Of a DNA stretch of 64,000 nucleotides, positions 17,301 through 55,034 are shown in pieces (position 1 is the stretch's first letter; each line of letters opens with the position of its first letter). The position numbers and the translations under genes are program-made. The stretch is from Macrostomum lignano (taxonomy: Eukaryota). The notes below the pieces were generated by a model, which was not told the DNA's origin, ran no database searches, and was given only the letters and a program-made list of their open reading frames with translations. The stretch lies in the NCBI GenBank assembly GCA_002269645.1, contig NIVC01000208.1, positions 1-64,000 of the forward strand, read 5' to 3'.

Positions 17301-20300
17301 ATGAAGAAGGAGTACATTCTCACCGAGGAGGAGAAGACTGAGAAGAGAAAGAAGATTGATCAGAATAAGTGAGCAGAGATTTTGTCTAACTTTGTTGTTT
17401 CTATCTAATGAAGAATGAAAGAGTTAAGAATAATATTCTGTGCTTAAAGAGATAGACAATCCAAGAATAAGATTAGATATTCAGACAATTAGATTAGTAT
17501 ATTCTAAGAATGAGATCAGATGTTTGAACCAGATTTAATATCGAGACTAGGCAGTGTGGGAATTCGGTTACGTATATTTTAGTGGTGAGAGTAGATTAAT
17601 CATATTACAACTCAAATATGGTAAGTAAATTGCCACCCGGTCACTCACCGAGTCACTCCGCTCACTCACCCAGTCACTCTGGTCTCTATTGGTCACTCCG
17701 GTCACTCACATAGTCACTTTGGTCTCAACTGGTCACTCCGCTCACTCACCGAGTCACTCTGGTCTCAACTGGTCACTTCGGTCACTCACCCAGTCACTCT
17801 GGTCTCAACTGGTCCCTCCGGTCACTCACCCAGTCACTCTGGTCTCAACTGGTCACTCCGCTCACTCACCCAGTCACTCTGGTCTCAATCAGTCACGGTC
17901 TCAATCAGTCACTCCGCTCACTCACCCAGTCACTCTGGTCTCAATCAGTCACTCCGCTCACTCACCCAGTCACTCTGGTCTCAATCAGTCACTCCGCTCA
18001 CTCACCCAGTCACTCTGGTCTCAATCAGTCACTCCGCTCACTCACCCAGTCACTCTGGTCTCAATCAGTCACTCCGCTCACTCACCCAGTCACTCTGGTC
18101 TCAATCAGTCACTCCGCTCACTCACCCAGTCACTCTGGTCTCAAACGGTCACTCCAGTTACTCCCCAGTCACTCTGGTCTCAATCGGTCACTCCAGTTAC
18201 TCCCCAGTCACTCTGGTCTCAATTGGTCACTCCAGTCACTCCCCAGTCACTCTGGTCTCAATTGGTCACTCCAGTCACTCCCCAGTCACTCTGGTCTCAA
18301 TTGGTCACTCCGGTCACTCCCCCAGTCACTCTGGTCTCAATCGGTGACTCCCCCCAAACCGCAGGCTGCTGCGCACTCTGGAGACTCTGGGCCTGCTCCC
18401 GAAGGAGCTCACGCCATCAGAGCTGGCCGACCGCGAGATCATGTCCGAATCGGACGTCCAAGAGCTGACCCAGTTGGCCGAGTACTATCGCCAGTCGGCC
18501 GAGGTTCGAGTCGCCGAGCGCCACGGCCAGCGTGCGGCCAACGTGGACGACCTGATCAACTTTGCCGAGCTGTCCGTGATGCGAGTGATCGATCTGAGCA
18601 AGAAGCTGGACGAGTTCCGGCAGCTCAGCCAGCCGGACAAGGTCTGCCTGTTGAAGGGCGGCGCCCTCGAGCTCATTCTACTGCGCGGCGTCATCAGCTT
18701 CGATCCGGACCATGCCAGATTCCTTGACGAGACGGACACGGCCAGTGCCGAGTCGGACTCTATGCAGGGCCAGGATTTCCTTAGAGCGGCCGGGCCCAAT
18801 GCCGGGCACGCGTTCTTTCAATTAGCCCGAACTCTGCGCAGCAACCTGCAGTGCGATCATCACACCCTGGTGGTGCTGCTCGTCTGCTGCCTGTTCAGCC
18901 CAGACCGGGCTGGCTTGTCGCCTGAGGGAAGGGATCTGGTGAGTGTCTGTTTCGGCTGAGGGATTATTTTTTATTGTCGGTTGTTGTTTTTTTTAAAAAT
19001 GCTTGCCTAGTGCCATTCTGAATCTTTTTTTCGCCACTTCCGAGAACTTTCTAATCGGGGCGATTCTAAGAAATGAATGTTTGGTGCCACTTCTTATGTC
19101 TTTTTTGGCGCCATTCTACGAAATGTTTGTTTGGCGCTATTCAAAGTAATGTCTATTTGGCGCTATTCTCAGAAATGTCCTTTAGGTACCATTTTGATAA
19201 ATGTCCATTGGGCGCCGTTCTAAGAAATTTGCTTTTGGCGCTTTTCTAAGAAATGTCTGTTTGGCGCCATTCTTTGAAATTTCTGCTTTGCGCCATTTTA
19301 AAAAAATTCTATTTGGCGCCATTCTAAGAAATATCCTAAGGTGCCATTCTAAGAAATATCTGCTTGGTGCCATTTTATGAAATGTCCATTTGGCGCCGTT
19401 CTAAGAAATGTCTGCTTTGCGCCATTCTAAGTAATGTCTTTTTGGCGCCAGTCTAAGTAATGTCTATTTGGCGCCATTCTTATAAATGTCTGCATTGCGC
19501 CATTTAAAAAAATTTTATTTGGCGCCATTCTAAGAAATGTCCGTGAGTGCCATTCTTAGAAATGTCTATTTAGCGCCATTCTTAGAAATTTCTGTTTTAC
19601 GTTCTTCTAAGAAATGTCTAAGTGGTGATATTTTTAAAATATGTTTTTTTGGCGCCATTCTTAGAAATGTCCATTTAGCGCCATTCTAAAAATGTGCTTT
19701 TGGCGCAATTCTAATTAGCTTCTTTTGATATCATTTCTGGAATTTTCTCTGAAGCGGCATTCTAGGAATTCCAATTCCAAGCGATCTACCGTATAACGGG
19801 CTAAAATACAGTAGGAAATCTGATGTCAACATTTTTGAAAAGCAATTCAAAATGCAGGCAGTTGAGTTTGCTTCAACTCTGTTTGCAGTCGGGATGCAGG
19901 AAACAGCTGCAGAGTTGTCTTGCTTTTCTCACGGGGATCTCTGCTTTTCCTTTGTTCGGTTTTTTTCGCTAGTGGAATCGCAAACTCTCCTGTAAGCTGA
20001 GGGCTGAGTACAGCTGTTTTTTCAAGAGCAACTGGCTTTGGGCATGAACTTGCTGCAGTCTGTCTCAGGAAATTTCATGTTGAATAATTCTACGATTGCA
20101 CTTCTTGCATACGTGCAGCTTCTGCTTGAATATTTTTCAATTGTACGGCTTCTGAACAATTTTACAATTTAAATCAGATCCTTTGAAATCACCGACACAT
20201 TATCATCTGAATCTCTTTGAAATCACCGACACATTATCATCTGAATCTCTTTGATCTCACCGACACATCAATACCCCCTAAATCTCTTTGATCTCACCGA

Positions 20301-25899: not shown

Positions 25900-26482
25900 T
25901 CATGGACAGGTGCCAGCGGAATAGGATGTGCCAGCTGAGCACGGCATCTGAACGTAGGCTCCATGATTGCAGCGCAGGTAGTGCACATCGCTGCTGCAGT
26001 CTCTCATGAAGTCGATGGTGCACGCCTGGCCATCTGTGAAGCAGACGGAGCTGGTGGTGGTGCTCATGTCAGCACCAGAGTTCGGAGGTGAAGTCGTGTT
26101 GACCAGTCTTCCTTCCACCACCTGAGTGGGTGCAACAATCAACGAAAAGGTTCTTAACAACAATGAAAGGCACTTATGGATTAGTTTAATATTACTGGTG
26201 TATTGAGCGCCGACTGACCTCGCTGCGGCAGTCCAGGGGTCTCCACAGCGCCTCATACTGAGCGGCAGTGGCCAGATAGCAAGTGCCGTCTCGCTTGAAC
26301 ACGGCGGTGCAGTTGGGTCGCACTGCGCACTCCACCGAGCAGGCACGAGGGTCTCGGACTCCGTTGACCTGCGACAGGTCGGTCACGTTTCCGGGGCAAC
26401 CGGAGACGACGCGGAAGCGGACGCAGACACCGGATGCGATGGACAGCAGGCTGAGCAGGCAGCAGGCAGTTTTTATAAACAT
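25900..26482 (-). CDS. Family 1 copy B: secreted PAN + short S/T linker + CBM14-like domain, about 161 aa
   Basis: Exon 1 26482-26219, 97-bp GT-AG intron, exon 2 26121-25900; DCSSDVHYLRCNHGAYVQMPCSAGTSYSAGTC. Confidence 0.85.
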
Positions 26483-27415
26483 TGCTTTTAGGGTTGGTTT
26501 TCAGAAGAAAATAATTTGTTTTGTTACTCAGGCTTTTTTTGACAGTTGAGGTTTGTTGGAGTTTCGTTTCCGTGCTAAACGAGTTATATGCTCAAAACAA
26601 GTGCTTAACAGCAAGTTCTGAGCGAATCAGCTTCTCAATGCCAATCAAAACATTGCATTGCCTTGAAACTTGAAGGCAACAGGCTCTAGCCTATCCTATT
26701 CTACACATGTAGACACACTATAACCCATTAATTCGTGAATACATGTAAGTCGAAAGCGGAGACTCAGCAACAGCGCCAGCAGAAACTTACATCTACGAAC
26801 ATCTTAGCTTGCTTGGTAACTGCATTGTGGCGGACTAAGCCCCAAATTAATGGCAGGTTTACATTGCAGATTTACATAGTATGTATAGTATAGCATACTA
26901 CACCTTAGTTTCCATTCTATTTTGTTAACTGTGCAGTCAAAGTTTAAGTATTTTCATATACATGTAATTCTTTATGGTAACACAAGGTGCAATGTGCATT
27001 CAGTTCCGACAACTGCGTGCGTTCTAAAACGGCCCTTTGCTTTCAATTCAATTCAAACTGTTTTTTTAATTAATACTCAATTCCGACAGTGGGCTACGAG
27101 TATTATATCCTAATCAAGGACAACTTGATAACTTAGATGAAACAACTGGATTAGGATCAAGGACAACTGTGGCTCAGAATGTGAGAAGTCAAATCGATTC
27201 CGAGAGTATTTATTCAATTCAGACCATAGATCAATGATTCGGACAGGCTGGTTTCTTCCTATATCCGAGCTTTAACTAATACTGTCTGTGGCCTGAATTG
27301 AAAATTTCGCCTCACTGAATTAAATACAAACTGTCGAAATCGGACTTGGACTTCTCGCGACTTATCGTCGCGTCACAAAGCAAGGGACAACTGAAAACCC
27401 CGTGAAATCCTCTGA

Positions 27416-28943: not shown

Positions 28944-29688
28944 TCATCCAGTGCACGTTCCAGCCGACCAACTTGTTCCATCAGCGCATTGCCTGCGAAC
29001 GTATTTTCCGTTTGTGCACTGAAGAAAATGCAGGTCACTGTCACAGGCTTGCATGTACATGAAATCAGTGCTGCAGGACTGTTCAGCTAGGGCGCAAATG
29101 GGGCCGATGGTGCTGCTTGGAGCAGTGGCACTGGCAGTTGGAGCAGTGACACTGGCAGTTGGAGCAGTGGCACTGGCAGTTGGAGCTGTGGCACTGGCAG
29201 TTGGAGCAGTGGCACTGGCAGTTGGAGCAGTGGCACTGGTAGTTGGAGCAGTGGCACTGGTAGTTGGAGCAGTGGCACTGGTAGTTGGAGCAGTGGCACT
29301 GGTAGTTGGAGCAGTGGCACTGGCAGTTGGAGCAGTGGCACTGGTAGTTGGAACAGTGAAACTGTTGGAGGCTGCAACAGACTCAATACTGTCGGTTGTA
29401 TCAGTGGCCACCTCTCATCTACAACCTAAAAGAAGCGATTGCATACGTAAATTTCTGTTGCGGTGCCTAGTTAATACAATTCATAGTAAGAAATATATAA
29501 ACAAGAAGGAAAGAAATGACAGAGAGCCGACTGACCTCGCTGACGCAGTCCAGGGGTCTCCACAGCGCCTCATACTGAGCGGCAGTGGCCAGATAGCAAG
29601 TGCGGTCTCGCTTGAACACGGCGGTGCAGTTGGGTCGCACTGCGCACTCCACAGAGCAGGTGCGATGGTCTCGAACCCCGTTGAAATT
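28944..29688 (-). pseudogene. Family 1 copy C: 5'-truncated exon 1; exon 2 frameshifted near its start, with an expanded 21-bp stalk and intact Cys6 domain
   Basis: Homology starts at NGVRD (about 29688) with no ATG or signal peptide. Exon 2 29425-28944 is 482 nt and lacks AGAT relative to copy F. Confidence 0.75.
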
Positions 29689-30372
29689 CAATAGGCCAAA
29701 AGCAGGCACTGAAAGACAGCTGAGCACACAGATTTATTCCGCTCGTCCAAAAAAACCTCCAGCAATCCTCTGGTAGGGAAAAAAGACGAGCGGCTTGCAT
29801 GGGACATCCGAGTGCTTTCAGTATTTATTAGTTCGTATTTGCCGGAATTGAAAACCTTTTGAGTTGTCTGAGTGCAAAGTCAGTAGCAGTTAAAGATTCA
29901 AGAATCAGTTAAAAACAGTTCAGTTTGACCTGATTTCAGGAATAAAACAGCAAAATGGTTTCTAAGCATGAAAGCGAAGCAGATTAGAAATCTAACAAAT
30001 CTTGAGTGAAAGTCACAACGATTCGCCTTGAAATCGCTTGGGTTTCAAGCTATGCACTTTAAAATGCGCATGCACTACTAGTGATGAGAAGTTGGTGAGT
30101 AGTTAAATTTACATGTAACTCGACTCTGAAGTCCAGCACTAGTCACTATGTTCTCATCCCAAGCAGTAGTATTGTGCGAATATGTTTGAATTCAAAGTTC
30201 TGCGAATTAAGGTATTGAAACTGATTAATTGGTTCAACAGCATAATGTATAAATTGATTACATATAGAAGAGCGTTCTAATCAGATTAAGGGTTGTGAAT
30301 ATCCTAAACAGTGACCGTCAGAGTTAAAATATTACTGGCCAATCCCCACTTCAACAAGCGGTTGCAGTGCCA

Positions 30373-31866
30373 TCAGGTGCCCGAGTCGCAGGCGGCCGAC
30401 TCCAGAAGCACGGACACGAAGCCCTGGTCGCCGGTCCAGCTGCCGCCGAACACGCAGCCGCCCCTGCAGAAGGAGCCGCCGCCACCGCCGATGTGGCCGT
30501 AGCCCAGTCCGGCTCCGCCACCGCTGAAGCCACCGCCGGCTCCAGCGGCGCCTCTCACTGAGCTGGTCCTGCTGCCGCCTCCGCCGCCTCCGCCAAAGCC
30601 TCCGTTGCAGACGCTGCCGTTTCCGGCGCTGCCGCCGACCCAGCCGTCGGCCAGACTGCCGCCTCTCTCTCCGTCCGAGGAGCTCCGCCTGGGGCTGACG
30701 GCCCTGCCGAGCCAGCCGGCGCCGCAGCCGCCGTGGTTGCTATCGCTTGGGGTGCTAGCGGGGCTGTTGGAGCCCGGCTGACCGTTGGTGCCGCCGAATC
30801 CCGCGAAGGGGGCGTAGCCACCCAGGCTGTCGGAACCGTTTATCCCAGTCTCTCCTGGTTTTCCTACGGTGAAATCAGTCAAACTGCTTATCCGAGTGGT
30901 TTTTGCTTATCATATTTTACAATTTCTAGCAACTGAAGCCACTGAGCTCACCATTTGTAAAGCTGGAAGCTCCGCCGCCTCCACCGGCAGCCAGCAGCAG
31001 CAGCCGGTCGACCGTCCGGTACACGAAGCTGCCGCCGCCTCCGCCGCCTCCTTCGATATCCAACGACGTCGAGCCGCCCATCTGACCCACAACGATGCTC
31101 AGCTGGGTGCCGGCTGTCAGGTTGACTCTGGTGCTCACCTGGGCTCCCTGGCCTCCGGCTTTGTTCGTCAGTAAGTTTCCTCCACCTCTGGCGCCGGCAG
31201 CTTTGATCAGGTAGCAGCCGGTCGTGTTGATGAGGACGCTTTGGATTGAGCCGTTTCTACCTGTGCTGCTGTCTGCAACGGAGCACCGTCAGCGAGTTAC
31301 AAAACTGGAGTGAGTGCAATTTGTGGGCCAAAATCATGTCCACAACCCACAACTAAGACTAGGCATTGATGACTCACTCAGAAGCTGCTTTGCAGGCGAA
31401 GGCCAGTCGCTGTCGTCCGCTTTCCACACCTTCGCACCGACCTGAGATCCGATGACTTGCTGCAACTGATCTGCTGAGATTGACAGCTTGGCGGTTGTTA
31501 TGGCAACGACAATCTCGCACGTGGCATTGCTCTCCACAGAGACGGCAGCGCTGCAGTTCACCCTCTGGCACTTTGCTAGACAGTCGATTACATTAATAGC
31601 CTTGGTTGTAGTCGTGACGTTGTTGTAAGAGTTCAGAACGGCTTTAAGCATGTGAAGCTGCTGCTCTGAGCACACAGAATAGGTCCGCACACTGGTGGCG
31701 CCTTGTACTCGAAGCACGGGAGAGCAGAAAACTGCGTTGGGGCAGTGCGCAGTGCGTAATAAATATCATGCATTGAATAACTGTGAGCAGCGGTACGTAT
31801 TTAAGTCAGGATTAAAGTCACTTACTAATTATGAAACGTAATTGCAAAGACAAAAATATCTGTCAT
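30373..31866 (-). CDS. Family 2 copy 1: secreted PAN + ALK/LTK-type glycine-rich-domain protein, about 401 aa if a 1-bp excess in exon 1 is an error
   Basis: Exons 31866-31826, 31731-31378, 31272-30952, 30863-30373. Removing one base of the A5 run at 31852-31856 gives MTDILSLQLRFIIIFCSPVLRVQG. GRD motifs TGRNGSIQ..TGCYLIKAAGARGG, LLLAAGGGGGA, GGCGAGW, GGFGGGGGG, GGGGGSF. Confidence 0.7.
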
Positions 31867-33074
31867 GCTAGCAGCGTTAGCTTAATTGTCAGCATCGAAT
31901 CTCCTGCGATGTTTATTGTACAAACAACTTGAGAGACAGCTACTTTACCTGTCCTCAAATCATTTGTATGCTTGCTCGAAGGCGGGAAGCAGTGTGTGCT
32001 TGTTGCTAGCTACTGTTTTTATGGGCTGCTCCTTATGAAATGACGCTTGCTAGAGATTAGAGATTCGTAGTTTATTTAGAGTTGATTGAATAGAAACAAG
32101 CAATTCGCAAGCGTTACGCCTCTGGTCCTAAGCTTCATTCTATCAGTTAGAAGACATCAAGATGACGCGGTTGCAGTCGGGGTAACTTACCGAAAAGAAG
32201 TTTCAACAGAAAAACTTGATTCACCATTGCAAGGGGTTCCAGCTTCCTAAGTACGGATGAAGTGGTTTGCTTCAGTTTTGGAGCTAGCTCGAATCGGGTT
32301 ATCTTGTCTTCTCAGTTTCAAGCTAATCCGCAACATTTTTATACAGCTCAACTTATATGCTTTGGGAATGTAGAAAGCACTGCTCAGGGCACCTCACAGC
32401 AGCTCACAGCACCAACCCCTTCAATAGTGTGTACTTGAGTACTTGGAAACTGTGGAATGATGACTTTGACAATATAAGGTTATGTGGGTGAGTGATGACT
32501 GACTTACAGAAGCCGTGGCAGGAATGCAAAATTGTGAATTGCCAGCTGTTATCGGTCCTATCCACTCGAAGATTCTGACTGCTGATGACCATGTGCTCAG
32601 AGTTGACTGTTTCCCACCTGCAGTTTCCCAAACACTCGTGATGTCGCTCCAATCTTGCCGGTTTCAGACAAGCGCCTGCAGGAAAGCAGCGAGCGGCTCC
32701 CACGATGCGAGCGCCTCAATTCCTGCTTAGCCCAAGAATCCCAGTCCCAATTCTGTTGCTTGTGAAAACTCCATCAGGGACTGAACCTCGGTTAGAGCCA
32801 ACTGGGGAACTTTATGCAATTGAGTACTTTATAATACAAACAGTTAGTAAATGCTTGGCTAGAACAGGCTTGTTTTGTCAAACCTCAGAGCATTTATATA
32901 CCATTTCAACTGCACTGAGTCCTATCTCGGATTTCAGCCAGGGCACGATGCACAATACATTTTTCATTCTTCATAAATAGTGACAAATGTTTGCAATTGC
33001 ATCAACTTTCTTCCACAATCTCTGTCTCTCCTTCTTCTTCTCAGACTTCATCGGTGACTACCAGATTCTTACAT

Positions 33075-33540
33075 CTCCAGAACCTCCCTGCATCTCCGGC
33101 ATCTCCCTGCATCTCTGGCACCTCCCTGCATCTCAGGCACCTCCCTGCATCTCAGGAACCTCCCTGCATCTCAGGAACCTCCCTGCATCTCCGGAACCTC
33201 CCTGCATCTCCGGAACCTCCCTGCATCTCAGGAACCTCCCTGCATCTCCGGAACCTCCCTGCATCTCTGGCACCTCCCTGCATCTCCGGCACCTCCTGGC
33301 ATCTCTGGCACCTCCCTGCATCTCCGGCACCTCCCTGCATCTCTGGCACCTCCCTGCATCTCTACCACCTCCCTGCTTCTCCGGAAACTCCCGGCATCTC
33401 TGGCACATCCCTGCATCTCCGGAACCTCCCTGCATCTCTGGCACCTCCCTGCATCTCTGGCATCTCCCTGCATATCTGAAACCTCTCTGCATCTCTACCG
33501 CCTCCCTTCATCTCTGCCACCTCTCTGCATCTCTGCAACC
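33075..33540. repeat. 19-bp minisatellite (CACCTCCCTGCATCTCNGG)
   Basis: Direct reading; paralogous to 40193-41410 (shared flanks). Confidence 0.9.
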
Positions 33541-33731
33541 TTGCAGCATCTACCAGAAGCTTATACTAAACCCTGAGTAATTTCTTTTACCTGTCATGAC
33601 GGTTGCTGCAGGAAAGCTAACCCAAGCAGTTTGCTTTGAGCATTTTAATCGGGTGCATTGCATAAACAAGAATCGCCTGATACGAGGAGATTCTGTCTAT
33701 GGCTTATCTCCTAGTATCAGGCGATTCTTTG

Positions 33732-33928
33732 TATGTAATCCACGGCTGGCATGTGCGACCCGCATAACTCCTTATCTCCGCCGGAGATAATGAGTTATCT
33801 CCGCTAGCCATGTATGGCACGAAGCAAAGCGTTGCTTTGTCTATGGTAGCGGAGTTACGCTACTGATTATCTCCGCGAATTCAACACTGGGGGAATAGAC
33901 GAGGCGCACAAGCAAAGTGGATTACATA
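33732..33928. mobile_element. Putative about 195-bp TA-flanked MITE with internal palindromes
   Basis: TATGTAATCCAC (33732-33743) / GTGGATTACATA (33917-33928); absent from the paralogous block near 41580. Confidence 0.5.
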
Positions 33929-34659
33929 AGCAATCTCTGTCGGCTCAAACATTATCCCTAAGTAATTAAAAAGCGCATCAACGCACTGAGCTACAGCAGT
34001 TGAAACTAAGCGTATGCACCACGAATTTCCGAGCCAGAAGGTACAGCATGGCAACTCCAGGATTCGTCTCCATAGGGAAATTGCTGCTACCGTTTACAAG
34101 TTTTGTGACCTTCTGAACAAGTTTGAAGCCTTGCAACTCATTCACCGAAAGCAGACACTGAAAGACAGCTGAGCACAAAAATCTGTTCCGCTCGTCTAAA
34201 AAAACCTCCAGAAATTCTCTGGCAGGAAAAAAAGACGAGCGGCTTTGGACAGACGATTGCGTTGAGTATTTATTAATTACCCAGAACTAAGAACTACTTG
34301 AGTTGTCCGAGTGCAAAATCAATAGCAATGAAGGATTCCAGAATCAGTTAAATAGCAGTTTAATTCAACAAAGGAACAGCAAAAAGTGTATTGAAGAAAA
34401 ATTTCGATTAAGTATGAAGAAGTAGTTTGAGAACACAACAGTTAATTCCCGGGGTTTCAAGCTACAGACTTTAAAGTGCGCACGCACTACATCGTGATGA
34501 GAAGTTAGTGAGTAGTTAGATTTAGAGTTATGAAGTCCAGCACTACTCACATTGTTCTCATTCAAAGCAGTATAGTGCGAATATTTTGAAATTCATAATT
34601 TCGCAAAATTAGATTGAAGCGAGAAAATCAGAATCATTTCGCTTACGACCGACCTATTT

Positions 34660-34897
34660 TACCGACTTCAAATGAATTTCTACCGACTTCAAATGAATTT
34701 TTACCGACTTCAAGTGAATTTCTACCGACTTCAAATGAATTTCTACCGACTTCAAATGAATTTCTACCGACTTCAAATGAATTTCTACCGACTTCAAATG
34801 AATTTCTACCGACTTCAAATGAATTTCTACCGACTTCAAATGAATTTCTACCGACTTCAAATGAATTTCTACCGACTTCAAATGAATTTCTACCGAC
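34660..34897. repeat. Homogeneous 21-bp minisatellite AATTTCTACCGACTTCAAATG, about 11 copies
   Basis: Direct reading; the paralogous site at about 42200 has a single TTTTACCGACT. Confidence 0.95.
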
Positions 34898-35061
34898 TAA
34901 AAGTCCTCTTACCTGTTGTTTCCCTGCTATTTCTTTCATAGAACTGAGCTTTTTGTCCCAGAAAACAAACGTCAATGTTCACAAGACTAAGCAGCTATTA
35001 ATCAGTGACCGTCCAGGTTAAAACACTAGTGGCCAAGCTTAATCCGGTGGTTGCAGTGCCA

Positions 35062-36567
35062 TCAGGTGTCTGAGTCGCAGGCGGCTGAGGCTGACTCCAG
35101 CAAGACGGACACGAAGCCCTGGTCGCCGGTCCAGGTGCCGCCGAACACGCAGCCGCCCCTGCAGAAGGAGCCGCCGCCACCGCCGATATGGCCGAAGCTC
35201 AGTCCGGCTCCGCCACCGCTGAAGCCTCCGCCAGCTCCAGAGGTGCCTCTCAGTGAGCTGGTCCTGCTGCCGCCTCCGCCGCCTCCGCCGCCTCCGCCGA
35301 AGCCTCCATCGCCGACGCTGCCGTTTCCGGCGCTGCCGCCGACCCAGCCGTCGGCCAGACTGCCGCCTCTCTCTCCGTCCGAGGAGCTCCGTCTGGGGCT
35401 GACGGCCCTGCCGAGCCAGCCGGCGCCACAGCCGCCGTGGTTGTTATCGCTTGGGGTGCTAGCGGGGTTGTTGTAGCCCGGCTGACCGTTGGTGCCGCCG
35501 AATCCCGTATTTTGAATTGAGTTCCCACGGCTGTCGGAACCGCTTATCCCAGTCTCTCCCGGTTTTCCTGCGGGGAAATCAATCAAGCTGCTGATCCAAA
35601 TGGTCGTGCATTCTCATAATTTACAATATAAGCAACTGCAGCCGCTCAGCTCACCATTTCTATTCCAGGAAGCTCCACCGCCTCCACCGGCAGCCAGCAG
35701 CAGCAGCCGGTCGACCGTCCGGTACACGAAGCTGCCGCCGCCTCCGCCGCGTCCTTCAAATTCCAAGGAGGTCGAGCCGCCCATCTGGCCCACAACGATG
35801 CTCAGCTGGGTGCCGGCTGTCAGGTTGACTCTGGCGCTCACCTGGGCTCCCTGGCCTCCGGATGTGTTGTTCAGTAAGTTGTCGCCACCTCTGGCACCGG
35901 CAGCTTTGATCAGGTAGCAGCCGGTCGTGTTGATGAGGACGCTTTGGATTGAGCCGTTTCTACCTGTGCTGCTGTCTGCAATGGAGCGGCGTCAGCGAGT
36001 TACAAAACTGGAGTGAGTGCAATTTCGGTCTTTGCTAGCCAATCCACAACAATGTATTGATGACTCACTCCGAAGCTGCACTGCAGGCGAAGGCCTGTCG
36101 CTATCGTCCGCCTTCCACACCTTCGCACCGACCTGAGATCCGATGACTCGCTGCACCTGATTTGCTGAGATTGACCGCTTGGCGGTTGTTATGGTGACCA
36201 TCTCGCACATGGCATTGCTCTCCACAGAGACGGCAGCGCTGCAGCTAACCCTCTGACACTTTGCTAGACAGTCGATTGCAGTAGTGGCCTTAGTTGTTGT
36301 CGTGACGTTGTTGTAGGCGTTCAGAACGGCTTTGAGCATGTGAAGCTGCTGCTCTGAGCACACAGAATAGGTCCGCACACTGGTGGCGCCTTGTACTCGA
36401 AGCACGGGAGAGCAGAAAACTGCGTTGGGGCAGTGAAGTCAGTATAGAACAGAGTGCAGTAAAAAGCTTTAATTTAGACGGTCTTAAATACGAGCAATTT
36501 GGGAGCTGCATTTTAGTCACTTACCGAATAGAAAAGCAAGTTTTAATGACAAGCATTGCTCAGCCAT
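35062..36567 (-). CDS. Family 2 copy 2: secreted PAN + ALK/LTK-type glycine-rich-domain protein, about 406 aa
   Basis: Exons 36567-36525, 36419-36069, 35975-35655, 35567-35062 (1221 nt, all phase 1, GT-AG). Signal MAEQCLSLKLAFLFVFCSPVLRVQG; PAN-like DCLAKCQRVSCSAAVSVESNAMC; GRD to the stop; no TM segment. Confidence 0.85.
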
Positions 36568-37119
36568 GGCACTGCAGAGCTAGTAAGATTTCAATTTCTT
36601 GTGTTTCTAATTGTAGGACGATACACTTTAGAAGTTCTTCAGCAGTGATTTGGCAACCGGGTTGCGACCGGGTTTTTTATGAGCTGCTGTCGGATGGCAA
36701 TTCCGTTGGGACAGGGGAGAAAGCCTGTGAAAGGCGGGATCGCAGCCAATCGTAGATAGCAAGTCTTCTTGGCTCTCATGCGCTTCATTTTAGTCGATAG
36801 TCTGGGGGCGGGCTTCTCTGCTTGAGTTCCTTTGTTTCGGAGCTTTCTCCTGAGATCAAAGACACTGCTGCCTCTATTTACTCAGAGTTTATATTTAAAA
36901 GATTTTTACTTCATCTTTGACAAAAATGCTTTAAAACTTCAAACAGTGTTCATACATCCATTTAGTTTATTATCATAGCTTTCTTAGTCTCCGTTCTGGG
37001 ATTTAGCATTCAAAGAAATAGGAAATGTGTTTGGTAAAACAAGTTTTACCTGCTAAAAGCTTCGCATCGTTAAGTCACTCACTAGCATCTCAGCATCTCC
37101 CGAGTGAGCATTGGTATGA

Positions 37120-37216
37120 CGCTTCTTTGACGCTTGACGTGACGCTTCTTTTACGTTTGACGTGACGCTTCTTTTACGCTTGACGTGACGCTTCTTTTAT
37201 GTTTGACGTGACGCTT
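37120..37216. repeat. 23-bp TGACGTGACGCTTCTTTTAYGTT array, about 4 units, upstream of family 2 copy 2
   Basis: Direct reading. Confidence 0.9.
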
Positions 37217-40192: not shown

Positions 40193-41410
40193 CTGCATAT
40201 CTCTTTCACCTCCCTGCATCTCTACTATCTCCCCACATATCTCTTTCACCTCCCTGCATCTCTACTATCTCCCTGCATATCTCTTTCACCTCCCTGCATC
40301 TCTACTATCTCCCTGCATATCTCTTTCACCTCCCTGCATCTCTAATATCTCCCTGCATATCTTTTTTCACCTCCCTGCATCTCTACTATCTCCCTGCATA
40401 TCTCTTTCACCTCCCTGCATCTCTACTATCTCCCTGCATATCTCTTTCACCTCCCTGCATCTCTACTATCTCCCTGCATATCTCTTTCACCTCCCTGCAT
40501 CTCTACCATCTCCCTGCATCTCTACTATCTCCCTGCATATCTTTTTCACCTCCCTGCATCTCTACTATCTCCCTGCATATCTCTTTCACCTCCCTGCATC
40601 TCTACTATCTCCCTGCATATCTCTTTCACCTCCCTGCATCTCTACTATCTCCCTGCATATCTCTTTCACCTCCCTGCATCTCTACTATCTCCCTGCATAT
40701 CTCTTTCACCTCCCTGCATCTCTACTATCTCCCTGCATATCTCTTTCACCTCCCTGCATCTCTACCATCTCCCTGCATCTCTACTATCTCCCTGCATATC
40801 TTTTTCACCTCCCTGCATCTCTACTATCTCCCTGCATATCTCTTTCACCTCCCTGCATCTCTACTATCTCCCTGCATATCTCTTTCACCTCCCTGCATCT
40901 CTACTATCTCCCCACATATCTCTTTCACCTCCCTGCATCTCTACTATCTCCCTGCATATCTCTTTCACCTCCCTGCATCTCTACTATCTCCCTGCATATC
41001 TCTTTCACCTCCCTGCATCTCTAATATCTCCCTGCATATCTTTTTTCACCTCCCTGCATCTCTACTATCTCCCTGCATATCTCTTTCACCTCCCTGCATC
41101 TCTACTATCTCCCTGCATATCTCTTTCACCTCCCTGCATCTCTACCATCTCCCTGCATCTCTACTATCTCCCTGCATATCTTTTTCACCTCCCTGCATCT
41201 CTACTATCTCCCTGCATATCTCTTTCACCTCCCTGCATCTCTACTATCTCCCTGCATATCTCTTTCACCTCCCTGCATCTCTACTATCTCCCTGCATATC
41301 TCTTTCACCTCCCTGCATCTCTACTATCTCCCTGCATATCTCTTTCACCTCCCTGCATCTCTACTATCTCCCTGCATATCTCTGTCACCTCCCTGCATCT
41401 CTACCACCCC
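40193..41410. repeat. 40-bp higher-order repeat (21+19 bp subunits with CTCCCTGCAT core), about 30 units
   Basis: Period 40 at 40560-40740; the 411-aa ORF is an artefact. Confidence 0.95.
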
Positions 41411-42317: not shown

Positions 42318-42814
42318 TCAGGTGTCTGATGAGTCACACGCGGCTGAGGCCGACTCCAGCAGGACCGACACGAAGCCCTGGTCGCCGGTCCAGGTGCCGC
42401 CGAACACGCAGCCGTCCCTGCAGAAGGAGCCGCCGCCGCCGATGTGACCGAAGCCCAGTCCGGCTCCGCCACCGCTGAAGCCGCCGCCGCCTCCCGCGGT
42501 GCCTCTCACTGAGCTGGTCCTGCTGCCGCCTCCGCCGCCTCCCCCGAAGCCTCCGTTGCAGACGCTGCCATTTCCGGCGCTGCCGCCGACCCAGCCGTCG
42601 GCCAGACTGCCGCCTCTCTCTCCGTCCGAGGAGCTCCGCCTTGGGCTGACGGCCCTGCCGAGCCAGCCGGCGCCGCAGCCGCCGTGGTTGCTATGGCTTG
42701 GGGTGCTAGCGGGGCTGTTAGAGCCCGGCTGACCGTTGGTGCCGCCGAATCGCGTGAAGAGGGTGTGGCCACCCAGGCTGTCGGAACCGTTTATCCCACT
42801 CTCTCCCGGTTGTC
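42318..42814 (-). pseudogene. Family 2 copy 4: orphan terminal exon (GRD C-terminal half), frame intact
   Basis: ACCATAG|GA acceptor at the same position as in the paralogs; open to the stop; exons 1-3 not found upstream. Confidence 0.65.
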
Positions 42815-44495
42815 CTATGGTGTACAACTGTTGTCTCACGACGACCCAAAACGACAAAAAGGAAAAAGAAACTAATTAGTAATATAATAAAGACGTTATA
42901 GGTTAAAATATTCGACTAAAATATGCATTTTGTTTTTATAATTAACATCGAAGAGCTTAAAAACAAGTTTAACAAAACGGAGCATATTAATAAAGTTCAT
43001 AATCTTCCCAAGTTTCCTTTTTTTGCCAAGAAGTGACAATTAAATTCCTAAAAAGATTAATAATCTGCAAAAATTTCTATTGCAAAACAATTGAAACGAT
43101 ATTTAACCTTCAAATAAATTTTCTACCTGCAGACAAAGAGGTCCTTCACTTTATAACAAATTGCAAGCGTCAAAGGGAAAGACAAGTTTTACTCATTTCA
43201 TTTTTTGACTCCTGCTAATTCTACTGAAAAGAGGGGAAATTTAGTGAAAAAAAAGCGTTGAATAAATATTCTTTTCAATAACTGCTACACATGAATTGCC
43301 CTCTTGTCTCCTCGAATTTGTTTCGCTGTGTCATTTCGCTTTTGCACAAGGACCATTGTATATACAGTGGTCCTTGGGTCAAACGTACAGAATCACTACT
43401 AGATACATGATCAAAGATTTTACTACCTCTGGCCTAAATTACTCTTAATTATAAAATAAAAACCGATAAGAAATCAACAACTCAGCTAATTTGTACATAA
43501 ATTAACTAAGACGTCAATTATTGATTGCCTTGTCCTAGGATCTGAGCCGCCATCAACGAAAAGTTTTAATGAGCCGATTGGCTCAAGCTTCTATATGTGT
43601 ATATTAGTGATTTTTGCTGACAATTATGCTGACAATTAGATGTATAACTGTAGTCTCAGGACGATCCTAGGATGCAGGAGTACAAGACAAGGAGGAATAG
43701 GGTGCTCTAAAGAAGCACAGAAACTATTAAATATAACAAGGATATTAAATAAGTAAAATGATTTGAAGATAAAATATCTTAGATAAAATATCTTAGTAAA
43801 TTAAGACCAATGCGTTTAAAACATACGCAGATAAGAGGTCTTTGACTTTATAACAAAGCGAATTTAAAAGTAAGGACGAATTTTTCGGAAAATTCTGGAT
43901 AGAAATGGGAATTCGAGTGTTAAGACATGAAATTTCGGGGAAAATAGTTGAGAGCTAAAAGAAACGCATCGATGCACATTTTCTTCAATGCAGCTGCATG
44001 AATTACCAGCTCCTGTGTGTCTGATGCACCTCAATGCTTTCTTATCCTCATGAATTCTTTTCGCTGTATCGTTCCGCCTTTGGATTTGGTGACAGGCGTG
44101 TCATCTTTCCCCAGTACTTTTTTAGAATAGGAAAGCCTATGAAATTCACTCGGGATCACACTCACGCGTCTTGTCTGTGCCCGCCTTTTGTATTTTCTTT
44201 TCCTGCACTCAAGCCCGCCCTTAGAAAGCCCCTTGTGCCGCTCACAATTCAAAGCCATCTGCAGTTGCCAGCAGCTTTTCTAACTTTCGCATACTTTATC
44301 CCGATATTATCTTCAACCTAACCACGTCAATCCCACATTTAAATTTTTGCCCAGCAGTTTATTTTTGCTGCTTGTGTTAGCAGTTCTCAGGGAAGCTAGC
44401 CAGAAGTAGCTCATAGTAAGAAAACCAAATACGAGTATTACTGAGTGCTACGATGACCACAAAGTGATAGCAATAGTTGACTTCACAGCTGACCG

Positions 44496-45172
44496 TTAGA
44501 TTCGGATTAAAATGTGAACGCACGTTTTCAGAGCCGCTGACCATTTTGTTCCAGACCCACAAGTCTTTTGCACATATTTACTACCGTCGCATTGCAGAAA
44601 GTTTGTTTCACTGGTGCAATCGGCCAAAAAGGAGTTATCGAATGTGCAAGGCTGGTTGGCTAGAGAGCAGGGAAGCTGGCTGGTAGTGGAAACTGCGATT
44701 TCATGGCTAGTTGGAGCTGTGACACTGTTGGAGGCTGCAACAGACTCAATACTGTCGGTTGTATCAGTGGCCAATCTCCTCTCATCTACAACCTAAAGAA
44801 AGCGATTGCATACGTCAATTTCTGTTGCAATGTTTGGCTAATACAATTCATAATAAGAAATATAAACACAAGACAAAAAGAAATGACAGAGAGCCAACTG
44901 ACCTCGCTGCGGCAGTCCAGGGGTCTCCACAGCGCCTCATGCTGAGCGGCAGTGGCCAGATAGCAAGTGCCGTCTCGCTTGAACACGGCGGTGCAGTTGG
45001 GTCGCACTGCGCACTCCACAGAGCAGACGCGAGGGTCTCGAACTCCGTTGACCTGCGACAGGTCGGTCACGTTTCCGGGGCAACCGGAGACGACGCGGAA
45101 ACGGACGCAGACCCCGGACGCGACGGACAGCAGGCTGAGCAGGCAGCATGCAACTTCTAGGAGTGAAAACAT
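44496..45172 (-). CDS. Family 1 copy F: secreted PAN + S/T linker + CBM14-like domain, about 188 aa
   Basis: Exon 1 45172-44903, 110-bp intron, exon 2 44792-44496; ADCTSETNFLQCDGSKYVQKTCGSGTKWSAALKTC. Confidence 0.85.
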
Positions 45173-46429
45173 GGCTATTATGGCTTGCTTTCCAAAGAAA
45201 ATATTAATAAATAGTATTTTTTTAGTACTCAGACTTGCTTTTTAGAGCTGGGACGTGTTGGTGTAGTTTCATTTCTGTGCTGCACGAATTATATACTCAT
45301 AATACGTTTCTGAGCCAATTAGCTTCTCAGCCTGTGAGATGCCAATCAGAAGATTGCATTGCCTTAAAATTATTGGAGCCAATGCCTGCCGGTGCAAAAC
45401 GGTTGCAGCTGGTCCACCTGTGTGTGTAAACTGCAACTTTAACTGCGACTTTAACCGTTGTTCCTAGCCTGTCATATTCTCCTACGTGTAGACACACCGC
45501 ACCTAACTGACAACTGCCATTTAGCAACAGGAATTGAACTAGGGGCGCAACGAATCTGCAGTGTAGCTAATGAAGACATCAACTTAGTCAAAAAACAGGA
45601 AATATGCAAAATGTCAGAAAGCTGAGATGAATCAATGCCAGTATAAAGAATAATACTCCATTTTGCAGCGATCACTAAAAGCTCAACGCGCTGTGCAAAC
45701 TCTCAGGTTTTACAAACAGAGCAGCTGCTGTATGTAGATTCTTTGTTGGAGTTTCACAACCGGATCTGAAAATCGCTCAAATAATGGAGCCTATTCTAGG
45801 TTTTGGACTGGGATCAAATGGCTCTAAACGAAATTTGCACAACTTTTTCAAATAGCGCTTCATCGGTGCAGTCAACTGCAGTATCCAGGCCAGGTTCTCC
45901 AAAGTAAATTTGAAATGAGGATATTGACAAACAACCAAAAATTTATGAATACAAAAATTTGTATTGGATTTACTTTATTCCATTGGAAGAAACATGGCTT
46001 TTATGAATTCGAGATAAGCGCTGCGAAGTTTTCATGCTTATGACAGTAGTATGATTTCATATTTCACAAAAGCGAACGTTCTGTAATAAATTTACAAACT
46101 AATAAATAGCTATAAAATAAGCTATTTTGAATCCGCAATGTTCTAAAACATGGATTTTGAACCCGCAGAATTCAAATACCCAGAACTATTTTAAATGCAT
46201 TCTTAAATCTGAAGTCATACTCAAACAAAAACTTGCTAATACTTAAGATAGAGGTAACATACGAGTAAAATAGAGTAAATTCGTGTTAAATTAAGGTTTG
46301 AGTGCAGCATTGATCTCGTCGGCTGGGGTGCCGCGCAGAATGTCGGGCAATGTCTGTCTAAAGCAGGCATCGGTAAACTCCGGTCTCTGGCCCCTGCCTC
46401 TCTCTACGTCCCTTGAGTCCTTTGAAACT

Positions 46430-49809: not shown

Positions 49810-51480
49810 AAGCCAAAAGCAGGCACTGAAAGACAGCTGAGCACACAGATTTATTCCGCTCGTCCACAAAAAACCTCCAGAAATCCTCTGGTAGGAAAAA
49901 AAGACGAGCGGCTTGCATGGGACATCCGAGTGCTTTCAGTATTTATTAGTTCGTAATTAGCCGGAATTGAAAACCTTTTGAGTTGTCTGAGTGCAAAGTC
50001 AGTAGCAGTTAAAGATTCAAGAATCAGTTAAAAAACAGTTCAGTTTGACGTGATTTCAGGAAGAAAACAGCAAAATGGTTTCTAAGCATGAAAGCGAAGC
50101 TGATCAGAAATATAACAAATTTTGAGTGAAAGTCACAACGATTCGCCTTGAAATCGCTTGGGTTTCAAGCTATGCACTTTAAAATGCGCATAATCTACTA
50201 GTGATGAGAAGTTGGTGAGTAGTTAAATTTACATGTAACTCAACTCTAAAGTCCAGCACTAGTCACTATGTTCTCATCCCAAGCAGTAGTATTGTGCGAA
50301 TATGTTTGAATTCAAAGTTCTGCGAATTAAGGTATTGAAACTGATTAATTGGTTCAACAGCATAATGTATAAATTGATTACATATAGAAGAGCGTTTTAA
50401 TCAGATTAAGGGTTGTGAATATCCTAAACAGTGACCGTCAGAGTTAAAGTATTACTGGCCAAACCCCACTTCAACAAGCGGTTGCAGCGGCATCAGGTGC
50501 CCGAGTCGCAGGCGGCCGACTCCAGAAGCACGGACACGAAGCCCTGGTCGCCGGTCCAGGTGCCGCCGAACACACAGCCGCCCCTGCAGAAGGAGCCGCC
50601 GCCGCCGCCGCTGTGGCCGTAGCCCAGTCCGGCTCCGCCACCGCTGAAGCCACCGCCAGCTCCAGGGGCACCTCTCAGTGAGCTGGTCCTGCTGCCGCCT
50701 CCGCCGCCTCCTCCGAAGCCTCCATGGCAGACGCTGCCGTTTCCGGCGCTGCCGCCGACCCAGCCATCGGCCAGACTGCCGCCTCTGTCTCCGTCCGAGG
50801 AGCTCCGTCTGGGGCTAACGGCCTTGCCGAGCCAGCCGGCGCCGCAGCCGCCGTAGTTGCTATTGCTTGGGGTGTCAGCGGGGTTGTTGTAGCCCGGCTG
50901 ACCGTTGGTGCCGCCGAATCCCGCGAAGGGGGCGTGGCTACCCAGGCTGTCGGAACCGTTTATCCCAGTCTCTCCTGGTTTTCCTGCGGTGAAATCAGCC
51001 AAACTGCTTATCCGAGTGGATTTTGCTTATCATATTTTACAATTTCTAGCAACTGCAGCTACTAAGCTCACCATTTGTAAAGCTGGAAGCACCGCCGCCT
51101 CCGCCGGCAGCCAGCAGCGGCAGCTGCTGGTCACCCGTCCGGTACACGAAGCTGCCGCCGCCTCCGCCGCCTCCTTCGTAATCCAACGACGTCGAGCCAC
51201 CCATCTGGCCCACAACGATGCTCAGCTGGGTACCGGCCGTCAGGTTGACTCTGGCGCTCACCTGGGCTCCCTGGCCTCCGGATGTGTTCGTCAGCAAGTT
51301 TCCGCCACCTCTGGCGCCGGCAGCTTTGATCAGGTAGCAGCCGGTCGTGTTGATGAGGACGCATTGGATTGAGCCGTTTCTACCTGTGCTGCTGTCTGCA
51401 ATGGGACCGCGTCAGCGAGTTACAAAACTGGAGTGAATGCAATTTCTGTCTGTGCCAAATAATGGTTACCACTCAACACT
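49810..51480. repeat. Segmental duplication of 29695-31400 (3' half and downstream flank of family 2 copies 1 and 3)
   Basis: Near-identical flank, exon 4 and intron 3. Confidence 0.9.
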
Positions 51481-51999
51481 AAGACTATGCATTGATGACT
51501 CACTCCGAAGCTGCACTGCAGGCGAAGGCCAGTCGCTGTCGTCCGCCTTCCACACCTTCGCACCGACCTGAGATCCGATGACTTGCTGCACCTGATCTGC
51601 TGAGATTGACAGCTTGGCGGTTGTTATGGTGACCATCTCGCACATGGCATTGCTCTCCACAGAGACGGCACCGCTGCAGTTCACCCTCTGGCACTTTGCT
51701 AGACAGTCGATTACATTAGTAGCCTTGGTTGTTGTCGTGACGTTGTTGTAGGCGTTCAGAACGGCTTCCAGCATGTGAAGCTGCTGCTCTGAGCACACAG
51801 AATAGGTCCGCGAACTGTCGCCTTGTACTCGAAGCACGAGAGAGCAGCAAACTGCGTTTGGGCAATGAAGTCAGTATAGAACAGAGTGCAATTAAAAGCT
51901 TTAATTTAGACGGTCTTAAATATGATTAACTAATGAGCTGCATTTTAGTCACTTACCGAATAGAAAAGCAAGTTTTAATGACAAGCATTGCTCAGCCAT
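50493..51999 (-). CDS. Family 2 copy 3: secreted PAN + ALK/LTK-type glycine-rich-domain protein, about 401 aa
   Basis: Exons 51999-51957, 51851-51504, 51395-51072, 50983-50493 (1206 nt), phase-compatible GT-AG. Confidence 0.85.
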
Positions 52000-52574
52000 A
52001 GCACTGCAGAGCTAGTAAGATTATTTTCGCTTTCAAATTCTTGTGATTCTAATTGTAGGACGATACAATTTTTGGAAATTCTTCAGCAGTGATTTGGCAA
52101 CCGGGTTGCGACCGGGTTTTTTATGAGCTGCTGTCGGATGGCAATTCCATTGGGACAGGGGAGAAAGTCTGTGAAAGGCGGGATCGCAGCCAATCGTAGA
52201 GAGCAGACTTCTTGGCTCTCATGCGCTTCATTTTAGTCGATAGTCTGGGGGCGGGCTTCTCTGCTTGAGTTCCTTTGTTTCGGAGCTTTCTCCTGAGATC
52301 AAAGACATTGCTGCCTGTATTTACTCAGAGTTTATATTTAAAAGATTTTTACTTTATCTTTGACAAAAATGCTTTAAAACTTCAAACAGTGTTCACACAT
52401 CCAATTAGTTTACTATCAGAGCTTTCTTGGTCTCCGTTCTGGGATTTAACTGCAAAGAAGGAAGAAATGTGTTTGGTAAAACAAGTTTTACTCGCTAAAA
52501 GCTTCGCACCGTCAAGTCACTCACTAGCATCTCAGCAACTCCGCAGTGAGCATTGGTATAATGTTTCTTTGATG

Positions 52575-53530
52575 TTTGACGTGACGCTTCTTTTACGTTT
52601 GACGTGACGCTTCTTTTACGCTTGACGTGACGCTTCTTTTATGTTTGACGTGACGCTTCTTTTATGTTCGACGTGACGCTTCTTTTATGTTGGACGTGAC
52701 GCTTCTTTTTTGTTTGACGTGACGCTTCTTTTATGTTGGACGTGACGCTTCTTTTATGTTCGACGTGACGCTTCTTTTATGTTGGACGTGACGCTTCTTT
52801 TACGTTTGACGTGACGCTTCTTTTACGCTTGACGTGACGCTTCTTTTATGTTTGACGTGACGCTTCTTTTATGTTCGACGTGACGCTTCTTTTGTTTGAC
52901 GTGACGCTTCTTTTATGTTGGACGTGACGCTTCTACGTTTCTTTTATGTTTGACATGACGCTTCTTTTATGTTCGACGTGACGCTTCTTTTATGTTCGAC
53001 GTGACGCTTCTTTTATGTTTGACATGACGCTTCTTTTATGTTCGACGTGACGCTTCTTTTATGTTCGACGTGACGCTTCTTTTATGTTTGACATGACGCT
53101 TCTTTTATGTTCGACGTGACGCTTCTTTTGTTTGACGTGACGCTTCTTTTATGTTGGACGTGACGCTTCTACGTTTCTTTTATGTTTGACATGACGCTTC
53201 TTTTATGTTCGACGTGACGCTTCTTTTATGTTCGACGTGACGCTTCTTTTATGTTTGACATGACGCTTCTTTTATGTTCGACGTGACGCTTCTTTTATGT
53301 TCGACGTGACGCTTCTTTTATGTTCGACGTGACGCTTCTTTTATGTTTGACATGACGCTTCTTTTATGTTCGACGTGACGCTTCTTTTATGTTCGACGTG
53401 ACGCTTCTTTTATGTTCGACGTGACGCTTCTTTTATGTTCGACGTGACGCTTCTACGTTTCTTTTATGTTTGACATGACGATTCTTTTATGTTCCGACGT
53501 GACGTTTCTACGCATCTTTTATGTTCGATG
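52575..53530. repeat. 23-bp (T/C)GACGTGACGCTTCTTTTATGTT array, about 40 units, upstream of family 2 copy 3
   Basis: Direct reading. Confidence 0.95.
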
Positions 53531-54091
53531 TGATGCTTCTTTTATGTTTTTTTCTTTCCTTGAGTTTTCGTCACATTATAAAAGCTTTAAATAGAAACAT
53601 TGCACTCAAAATTCGAGCCTTTGTCGCTGCATTAGCAGTTCAGCCTTGCCACATCTGGGCTAGCTCTCATCGAATCGATCTATTTATTGGCATTAGCATC
53701 TCAGCAACTGCCCCACGAGCCCTGGCATCTCCCTAATCCTAACTATAGCTCTTCCCTAGAGCCATAACTATAATTTTTGGGAATCCAGACAGAATTTTTT
53801 AAGATTTTCGCTTAAGATGATAAAATTCAACTTCGGTAGCAACAGCAAATTTGTTCGGACATTCTGCCTTGAGACGGAACGTCCTGGTTGCATAATTACC
53901 TGGTTTTATAATATCGATTGATATTAAGATATTAAAAATCAGCTTTAAGGGGTTTACAAAAGAAAAAAGAAAAATCTACAAATTTTCAATTCGTCTAATT
54001 TTTTAGTCAAAAACGTAAATTTTTTTCGCAATAATTTAAATTCGAACATTTTCAGTAAAGATTTAATATAGACCTAAGCATACTTACATAC

Positions 54092-55034
<943 letters not shown>

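Follow-up and report, generated by a model that had tools for sequence, protein, structure and literature searches.

What does a glycine-rich domain (GRD) of the type found in the receptor tyrosine kinases ALK and LTK do in a protein that has no kinase? This question is raised by a gene of Macrostomum lignano located on contig NIVC01000208.1 (assembly GCA_002269645.1), of which positions 1 to 64,000 of the forward strand, here called the window, were analyzed. The window is eukaryotic in character, with introns present and micro- and minisatellites abundant. The focal gene consists of four exons on the minus strand from 36567 to 35062, read right to left, and its coding sequence of 1221 nt encodes 406 amino acids (aa) and ends with the TGA at 35064-35062. 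Judged from its sequence, the product is predicted to be a soluble, secreted two-module glycoprotein in which a disulfide-knotted, PAN/Apple-like module precedes a complete ALK/LTK-type GRD. Together with at least two tandem paralogues, the gene belongs to a Macrostomum-expanded branch of the kinase-less GRD family. The best explanation as a whole, to which we assign a probability of roughly 0.6, is that this PAN+GRD secreted protein acts as an extracellular binding or matrix component.

The focal locus is an intact gene and not a chance open reading frame, because paralogues are present in the window, their pairwise ratios of nonsynonymous to synonymous substitution (dN/dS) are 0.27-0.54, and the best database homologue is found with an expect value (E) of 3.6e-199. 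All introns have a canonical GT donor and AG acceptor. A first-pass annotation, made by a model from the letters alone, had placed a protein ending at a stop codon between 35062 and 36567; these bounds match the TGA and the ATG exactly, and the strand, which had been left unstated, is the minus strand. The exons are as follows:

36525 to 36567, minus strand: exon 1, with the ATG at 36567-36565, encoding MAEQCLSLKLAFLF and the first base of codon 15, the N-terminal part of the signal peptide; donor GTAAGT.
36069 to 36419, minus strand: exon 2, encoding the remaining signal peptide to about G25 (window position 36388), the PAN/Apple-like module and a linker ending in ...WKADDSDRPSPAVQLR.
35655 to 35975, minus strand: exon 3, encoding the first half of the GRD, which includes the TNF-like beta strands at the N-terminal end of the domain and the initial polyglycine runs.
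35062 to 35567, minus strand: exon 4, encoding the second half of the GRD, i.e., the polyglycine lattice and then the two closing TNF-like strands (...GDQGFVSVLLE), the tail SASAACDSDT and the TGA at 35064-35062.

The signal peptide was borne out by a single 19-residue Kyte-Doolittle window above 1.6, which covers residues 5-23 in the N-terminus MAEQCLSLKLAFLFVFCSPVLRVQG/A, and the protein contains eight N-glycosylation sequons. On the minus strand, an acceptor-like AG lies 4 nt 5' of the start codon (ctctgcag/tgccATGG, window 36568-36580). Macrostomum uses spliced-leader trans-splicing, and this AG could be a candidate trans-splice site.

The assignment of the GRD is carried by motif conservation, profile searches and predicted structure. 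Glycine makes up 29% of the residues encoded by exons 3 and 4. Exon 3 runs NSSTGRNGSIQ...GARGG...VVGQMGG...GGGGGSFVY...LLAAGGGGGASWNRN, and over both exons the motif series reads, in order, GARGG, VVGQMGG, GGGGGSFVY, LLAAGGGGGAS, GQPG, HGGCGAGW, GERGGS, GGFGGGGGG, GGGFSGGGAG and GGGGGSFC, so that the earlier observation of two exons carrying the ALK/LTK motif series holds for exons 3 and 4. About 65 columns of the domain, with those of this motif series among them, are conserved at 90% or more in 82 homologues; they include G208-G212, S213, F214, V215 and Y216, A226-A233, G283-W289 and G332-G337, all of which are present in the window protein. When the window protein alone was searched against the sequences of the PDB using phmmer, LTK was found (7nx0_C, E=0.0028, aa 134-198), and a profile of 81 relatives detected ALK at E=2.7e-10, SCD-2 at 2.2e-8 and LTK at 4.7e-6.

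The structure of the domain was modelled with a family alignment on the deposited Macrostomum protein P0001 (A0A1I8HRN4), 85% identical to the window protein, as a proxy for the latter. The mean predicted local distance difference test (pLDDT) score of this model was 78.9 and exceeded 90 over most of residues 160-410, with strands at 144-243 and 390-410 and, between them, an extended stretch lacking both helix and strand. This predicted layout matches a TNF-like sandwich of N- and C-terminal strands bracing an inserted polyglycine lattice. Comparison with the ALK/LTK ectodomain, which the first-pass annotation had named as a check, turned out in its favor: in the Foldseek search of the PDB, ranks 1-21 were all GRDs of LTK, ALK and SCD-2 (E from 2e-10 to 6e-6, probability 1.0, TM(target) score 0.40-0.59), and no other significant matches were found beyond these. 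We regard the assignment of an ALK/LTK GRD fold to the C-terminal two-thirds of the protein as sound, by proxy of the P0001 model. An unstructured glycine-rich material protein of the loricrin or PE-PGRS type is ruled out by the high-confidence fold together with the motif conservation, the loricrin- and PE-PGRS-like names that relatives bear at NCBI being compositional.

For the N-terminal module, the proposed PAN-like exon with the spacing C-x3-C-x4-C-x11-C was recovered by regular expression exactly once in the protein:

36205 to 36270, minus strand: C-x3-C-x4-C-x11-C core of the PAN-like module, aa 65-86, CLAKCQRVSCSAAVSVESNAMC, in exon 2.

The module contains five cysteines (C35, C65, C69, C74 and C86). 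In alignment A4 the residues C50, C54 and C59 of the PAN-like core are invariant and C71 is conserved at 90% or more. All five exon-2 cysteines align one-for-one with the PAN_1 domains of the coral proteins P0049 and P0054, both of which score above the Pfam cut-off, at a marginal pairwise sequence similarity between the focal and coral modules (E=0.28). The leading PAN-type Foldseek matches of the P0001 and exon-2 models are weak and comprise the HGF N-domain, plasminogen PAp, the lectin SML-2 and the MIC4 apple domain: the N-terminal part of the P0001 model matches the HGF N-domain (3hms, TM score 0.55, probability 0.93) and the Sarcocystis PAN lectin SML-2, and nearly all of the approximately 30 top matches of the model of exon 2 are PAN/Apple structures (HGF N-domain, plasminogen, SML-2, AMA1), with probabilities up to 0.99 and non-significant E values of 0.05-2. 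'Apple domain-containing protein' is also what UniRef calls the closest relatives, a name taken from the source and not a result of this analysis. The cysteine alignment and the structural matches are in line with the PAN-like nature claimed earlier, which we consider probable, not proven.

The earlier claim that the protein has neither a transmembrane nor a kinase part stood up as well. The signal peptide is the only 19-residue window with a Kyte-Doolittle value above 1.6, and no transmembrane helix follows the ectodomain; no kinase and, after the GRD, no EGF-like domain was matched by Pfam in the focal protein, and only the 10 residues of the tail SASAACDSDT lie past the last strand of the GRD. 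This tail is hydrophilic, which speaks against a GPI signal. That the gene might be a mis-modelled piece of a larger one, with further exons for upstream domains or for a downstream transmembrane or kinase part, was considered, since the AG just before the ATG could be the acceptor for an upstream exon as well as for a spliced leader. However, the signal peptide lies at the very N-terminus, and at the other end the TGA is invariant across the alignment of the four window copies. Frame constraint ends there: indels in the last codons of the copies measure 3 or 6 nt, whereas those just past the stop are not multiples of three. Nothing domain-like was detected in the 3.3 kb downstream up to the next copy (31760-35061), which were scanned with Pfam in the three minus-strand frames with X at stops and gave sub-threshold matches only, on minisatellite translations. 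Moreover, independent database models stop at this position too, and in the coral and Macrostomum homologues the C-terminus lies no more than a few residues from the corresponding beta strand. Such a larger gene is thus exceedingly unlikely, and no support for a downstream transmembrane or kinase exon was found in the sequence.

How the domain is used elsewhere bears on its role here. The best database matches of the focal protein are Macrostomum lignano proteins; identity between a window copy and a deposited protein peaks at 92%, and exact matches were not found. In more than 15 further Macrostomum relatives the same GRD follows other N-terminal modules, with WSC, PPC and CXC among the names given by UniRef; the EF-hands in one of them, P0010, were verified by Pfam. 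When the family profile was searched exhaustively with HMMER, 6,873 representatives of clusters formed at 50% identity scored E<=1e-3, among them 2,814 at <=1e-10 and 235 at <=1e-30. Many of these are 1,000-6,000 residues long with up to seven GRD stretches, and a Pfam scan of ten representatives revealed EGF+GRD, six EGF domains with a C-type lectin and the GRD, DUF285+GRD and multi-GRD proteins, with a kinase domain in 0 of the 10. Matches of about 300 aa in ENA sit on large, gene-sparse, animal-type contigs. Furthermore, a Foldseek search against predicted viral structures gave 69 matches at E<=1e-3, the best with a TM score of 0.62, a root-mean-square deviation of 3.4 A and 27% identity; they include phage tail-fibre, tail-collar, minor-tail and virion structural proteins as well as proteins of giant viruses. 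The rarity implied by the first-pass annotation therefore did not survive: kinase-less GRD proteins are the rule in a family of 6,873 representatives, and there are coral entries with PAN and GRD and close Macrostomum relatives in UniProt. Kinase-less GRD proteins are a very large, ancient extracellular family, of which ALK/LTK is the one well-studied offshoot. The architecture is already known from the coral proteins, the family is catalogued yet unstudied, and the focal gene is one more paralogue.

Kinase-less GRD proteins of 223-341 aa (P0003-P0005, P0011-P0014 and many phage proteins) are labelled 'receptor protein-tyrosine kinase' in UniRef/UniProt, and no kinase domain was found by Pfam in those relatives that were checked, P0017, a 'Protein kinase domain-containing protein', included. 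Such kinase names apparently result from automatic rule-based over-annotation keyed on the GRD family. The sole paper found that names PF12810 reports three proteins with this domain, without reported function, from the nematode-adhering fungus Drechmeria (PMC4859500). Literature searches for ALK-type GRDs outside kinases retrieved word coincidences only, and the family is not mentioned in the Macrostomum gland and seminal-fluid literature searched, including the supplements of one paper.

These relationships bear on the suggestion of the first-pass annotation that the protein serves as a ligand trap or decoy, i.e., that its soluble GRD sequesters a ligand of an ALK-family receptor and damps signalling. 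The fold is the same as that of the ligand-binding module of ALK/LTK, and secretion and the lack of signalling parts also speak for a decoy. However, the module of a decoy would be closest to that of the receptor it antagonizes, whereas the nearest relatives of the focal GRD are kinase-less: it is 22-26% identical to ALK/LTK by structural alignment, as compared to 45-50% for kinase-less cnidarian proteins. Among the 120 sequence relatives listed, no kinase Pfam domain and no Macrostomum ALK-type receptor was found, the supposed protein kinase P0017 included. The family is, moreover, present in multiple tandem copies with varied N-terminal modules. We also counted against a decoy that ALKAL ligands are not known outside vertebrates. 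Positive evidence for a trap was not found, and we regard this explanation as very unlikely. A truncated ALK is ruled out by the identity of 22-26%, the multi-copy state and the breadth of the family.

The tandem arrangement was seen when the focal model was compared to the window by tblastn, which detected three more copies on the same strand, here called C, A and D (the focal copy being B):

50493 to 51999, minus strand: paralogue C, intact, 401 aa, four exons at 51999-51957, 51851-51504, 51395-51072 and 50983-50493.
30373 to 31731, minus strand: paralogue A, exons 2-4 intact at 31731-31378, 31272-30952 and 30863-30373, exon-1 region diverged.
42318 to 42814, minus strand: fragment D, the last exon alone, which encodes the second half of the GRD; the frame is open and ends at a stop of its own, and the acceptor is AG (ccatag).

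By self-BLAST, the copies are segmental duplicates. The A and C units are 94% identical over 2.06 kb, and the focal and C units share 89% DNA identity over 2.26 kb, which takes in about 650 bp upstream of the ATG; the protein sequence of exon 1 is the same in the focal gene and in C (51999-51957). Between the focal copy and A and D, the coding sequence is 85-88% identical and the first 500-600 bp of the 3' flank 72-76%. For D, no equivalent of exons 2 and 3 was found upstream, where unrelated AT-rich sequence lies, and D is a gene fragment. The homology of A to the focal copy and C ends at 31747. Upstream of A (31747-31900, minus strand) the intron-1 donor region is kept (..aattaGTAAGTGACT) and the equivalent of exon 1 has diverged; an ATG at about 31866 leads either to a TAG or to a junction of phase 2, which does not fit exon 2, and no in-phase ATG is present. 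Paralogue A is probably 5'-defective despite its intact exons 2-4.

This local decay, with A defective in exon 1 and D reduced to its last exon, might extend to the focal gene itself, which would then be a recent duplicate drifting toward a pseudogene. In line with this, the focal copy alone carries a glycine in place of a cysteine kept in A, C, D, P0001 and P0002, next to an expansion by three glycines: window positions 35290-35325 (minus strand) encode GSVGDGGFGGGGGGGGGGS, and the other copies and both database proteins GSVC[NHD]GGFGGGGG[GC]GS. A dN/dS of about 0.5 likewise denotes moderate constraint only. On the other hand, the reading frame is open over 406 codons with canonical splice sites and an intact signal peptide, and exon 1 and the approximately 650 bp upstream are common to the intact copy C. 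As a consequence of the lost cysteine, the mature focal protein has 10 cysteines instead of 11, which makes their number even. Decay of the focal copy has, in our estimate, a slim chance.

One loop of the GRD differs in every copy:

35503 to 35532, minus strand: variable GRD loop, aa 251-260, SRGNSIQNTG.

The paralogues carry SLGSHAPFAG, SLGGYAPFAG and SLGGHTLFTR at this site, and P0001 carries SLGAGTTLAG. Such a difference in each member of a tandem family would suit a diversified recognition molecule, in which the PAN-GRD genes form a lectin-like, immune-type or mate/gamete-recognition repertoire with specificities set by the loops. The many further Macrostomum paralogues with swapped N-terminal modules, the pairing of relatives with C-type lectin and EGF modules and the occurrence of the same fold in phage tail-fibre proteins would also fit. 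However, the proportions of nonsynonymous (pN=0.33) and synonymous (pS=0.34) differences in the loop are about equal (pN/pS=0.33 in the remaining GRD), so that positive selection, of which there is no signal, was rejected for this loop; the comparison covers four copies. We consider a recognition repertoire unlikely but not negligible. A wider form of this idea, for which we would give similarly modest odds, holds that the PAN-GRD genes are part of a secreted recognition repertoire of flatworms and cnidarians, that the GRD is an ancestral general-purpose ligand-binding scaffold as in phage tail fibres, with paralogue-specific loops setting specificity, and that the cytokine-binding domain of ALK/LTK might be a late co-option of an adhesin- or lectin-type module.

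Following the preferred explanation of an extracellular binding or matrix protein, we propose that the protein would be an extracellular constituent of a surface coat or secretion, anchored through its PAN module to a partner that would be a glycan or a protein. The rigid GRD would provide a stable platform from which surface loops, among them the one that varies between paralogues, could make a second contact; in this way the protein could act as a bivalent cross-linker or adhesin, not as a signalling decoy. This role is suggested because the GRD is usually partnered by PAN, WSC, EGF and C-type lectin modules and is found in phage fibres, and because the neighbours in the window encode secreted proteins that are PAN-like, Thr/Ala-rich and chitin-binding-like. 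The other function raised by the first-pass annotation, a polyglycine-II scaffold for adhesion, is plausible, as it fits this company of lectin, EGF, PAN and phage tail-fibre contexts.

Several points weigh against this explanation. The GRD was not detected by Pfam in the window protein, ALK_LTK_GRD (PF12810) scoring 10.7 bits against a cut-off of 24.5 (E=0.51), and P0001, with 21.1 bits, is also below it. The Pfam search suggested by the first-pass annotation was thus negative for the protein itself, whereas the family profile identified ALK. Since profile and fold evidence agree, the sub-threshold scores and the absence of a PAN match were treated as a problem of sensitivity and composition bias. 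Relatives 44-50% identical to the window protein do pass the PF12810 cut-off. The structural evidence for the GRD rests on the proxy P0001 and not on the window protein itself. As to the N-terminal module, neither the window protein (searched to E<=1) nor P0001 (to E<=0.01) was matched by Pfam PAN_1 (PF00024), and the structure predicted for exon 2 of the focal gene reached a low pLDDT of 53. The replacement of the conserved cysteine and the gain of three glycines could mean relaxed constraint, and the variable loop looks unconstrained rather than positively selected, since synonymous divergence is equally high there. Finally, the adhesion or binding role is guilt by association, and neither expression nor localisation nor binding data were found in the literature for the focal gene or any kinase-less GRD protein.

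With regard to the surroundings of these genes, genes of another duplicated family of secreted proteins are interspersed among them on the minus strand, at 28944-29700, 25900-26670, 43858-45370 and 60746-61003. Its members combine a signal peptide and a PAN-like exon (CSVECAVRPNCTAVFKRDGTCYL; PAN_1 E=0.026) with a Thr/Ala-rich 7-residue repeat encoded by a 21-bp minisatellite and, at the C-terminal end, a 6-Cys module with sub-threshold matches to the chitin-binding domains CBM_14/CBM_19. A nuclear hormone receptor gene lies on the plus strand at 15676-16100 (zf-C4 exon, E=5.6e-10) and 18441-18959 (ligand-binding-domain exon, E=3.3e-10), the intron between the two exons being filled with 26-bp and 40-bp minisatellites. 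Minisatellites are unusually dense at 34656-34898, 33082-33535, 40193-41408, 52565-53548 and 54088-55034. A 21-bp unit is repeated 11.6 times about 165 bp past the focal stop, the arrays of 19-bp and 40-bp units at 33 kb and 40-41 kb are 72-76% similar, a 23-bp array upstream of copy C recurs in a short form at 37117-37216, upstream of the focal copy, and (ATAG)n at 54088-55034 reaches up to 237 copies. An open reading frame of 145 aa at 4273-4710 (minus strand) shows a weak, sub-threshold match (E=0.0012) to DUF4371, a domain typical of transposase-derived proteins, and may be a transposon remnant.

If an extracellular binding role is true, the focal gene is ordinary in itself and its value is that of an example. 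For a family of thousands of members, from phages to animals, no function of any kinase-less member was found in the literature, though two oncogenic human receptors owe their ligand-binding module to this family. Macrostomum lignano is open to RNA interference, transgenesis and in situ screens, and it holds a tandem cluster of simple two-module GRD proteins, which makes it convenient for asking what a GRD does without a kinase. As to the role of GRDs outside ALK/LTK, the locus adds no testability over the deposited Macrostomum and coral sequences. The automatic 'receptor protein-tyrosine kinase' names, borne even by phage proteins, are a database error.

Among known systems, the closest to the focal protein are the Macrostomum proteins P0001 and P0002 (A0A1I8GD17), both named 'Apple domain-containing protein', which are 85-88% identical to it and share its PAN-like + GRD architecture, its exon-derived segments and its C-terminal end; they differ in that the N-termini of the deposited models are artefacts of translating untranslated region or intron, and the focal copy has one cysteine fewer and three glycines more. 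In corals, ABFA07_017308 of Porites harrisoni (P0049) combines PAN and GRD, and the 'putative lysozyme-like protein' of Pocillopora verrucosa (P0054) combines PAN+EGF+EGF+GRD, both proteins being above the Pfam cut-offs for PAN_1 and ALK_LTK_GRD, with GRDs 44-45% identical to that of the window protein. Like the focal protein, they have a signal-type N-terminus, a PAN domain and a GRD that ends right past the last strand, with neither a transmembrane nor a kinase part; unlike it, they have a longer linker, and in P0054 two EGF-CA modules separate the PAN domain from the GRD. The combination may be of independent origin in corals and Macrostomum, because the similarity of the PAN sequences is marginal.

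The viral proteins, such as A0A2H4JH33 of an uncultured member of the Caudovirales, virion structural proteins of Synechococcus phages and the tail fiber of Achromobacter phage Mano, share with the focal protein a GRD-type fold, the lack of a kinase and an extracellular place with presumed host-binding roles, but they are structural proteins without PAN, and their relationship is known from predicted structures alone. Lastly, ALK, LTK and SCD-2 (7nx0, 7nx1, 7lrz, 7n00, 7lir) have in their ligand-binding module a fold, a polyglycine-II lattice braced by a TNF-like sandwich, that recurs in the focal protein together with the motifs GAxGG, VGQxG and AAGGGG, at an identity of only 16-26%. By contrast, the focal protein has no EGF-like domain, transmembrane helix, kinase, MAM or LDLa and carries a PAN module instead.

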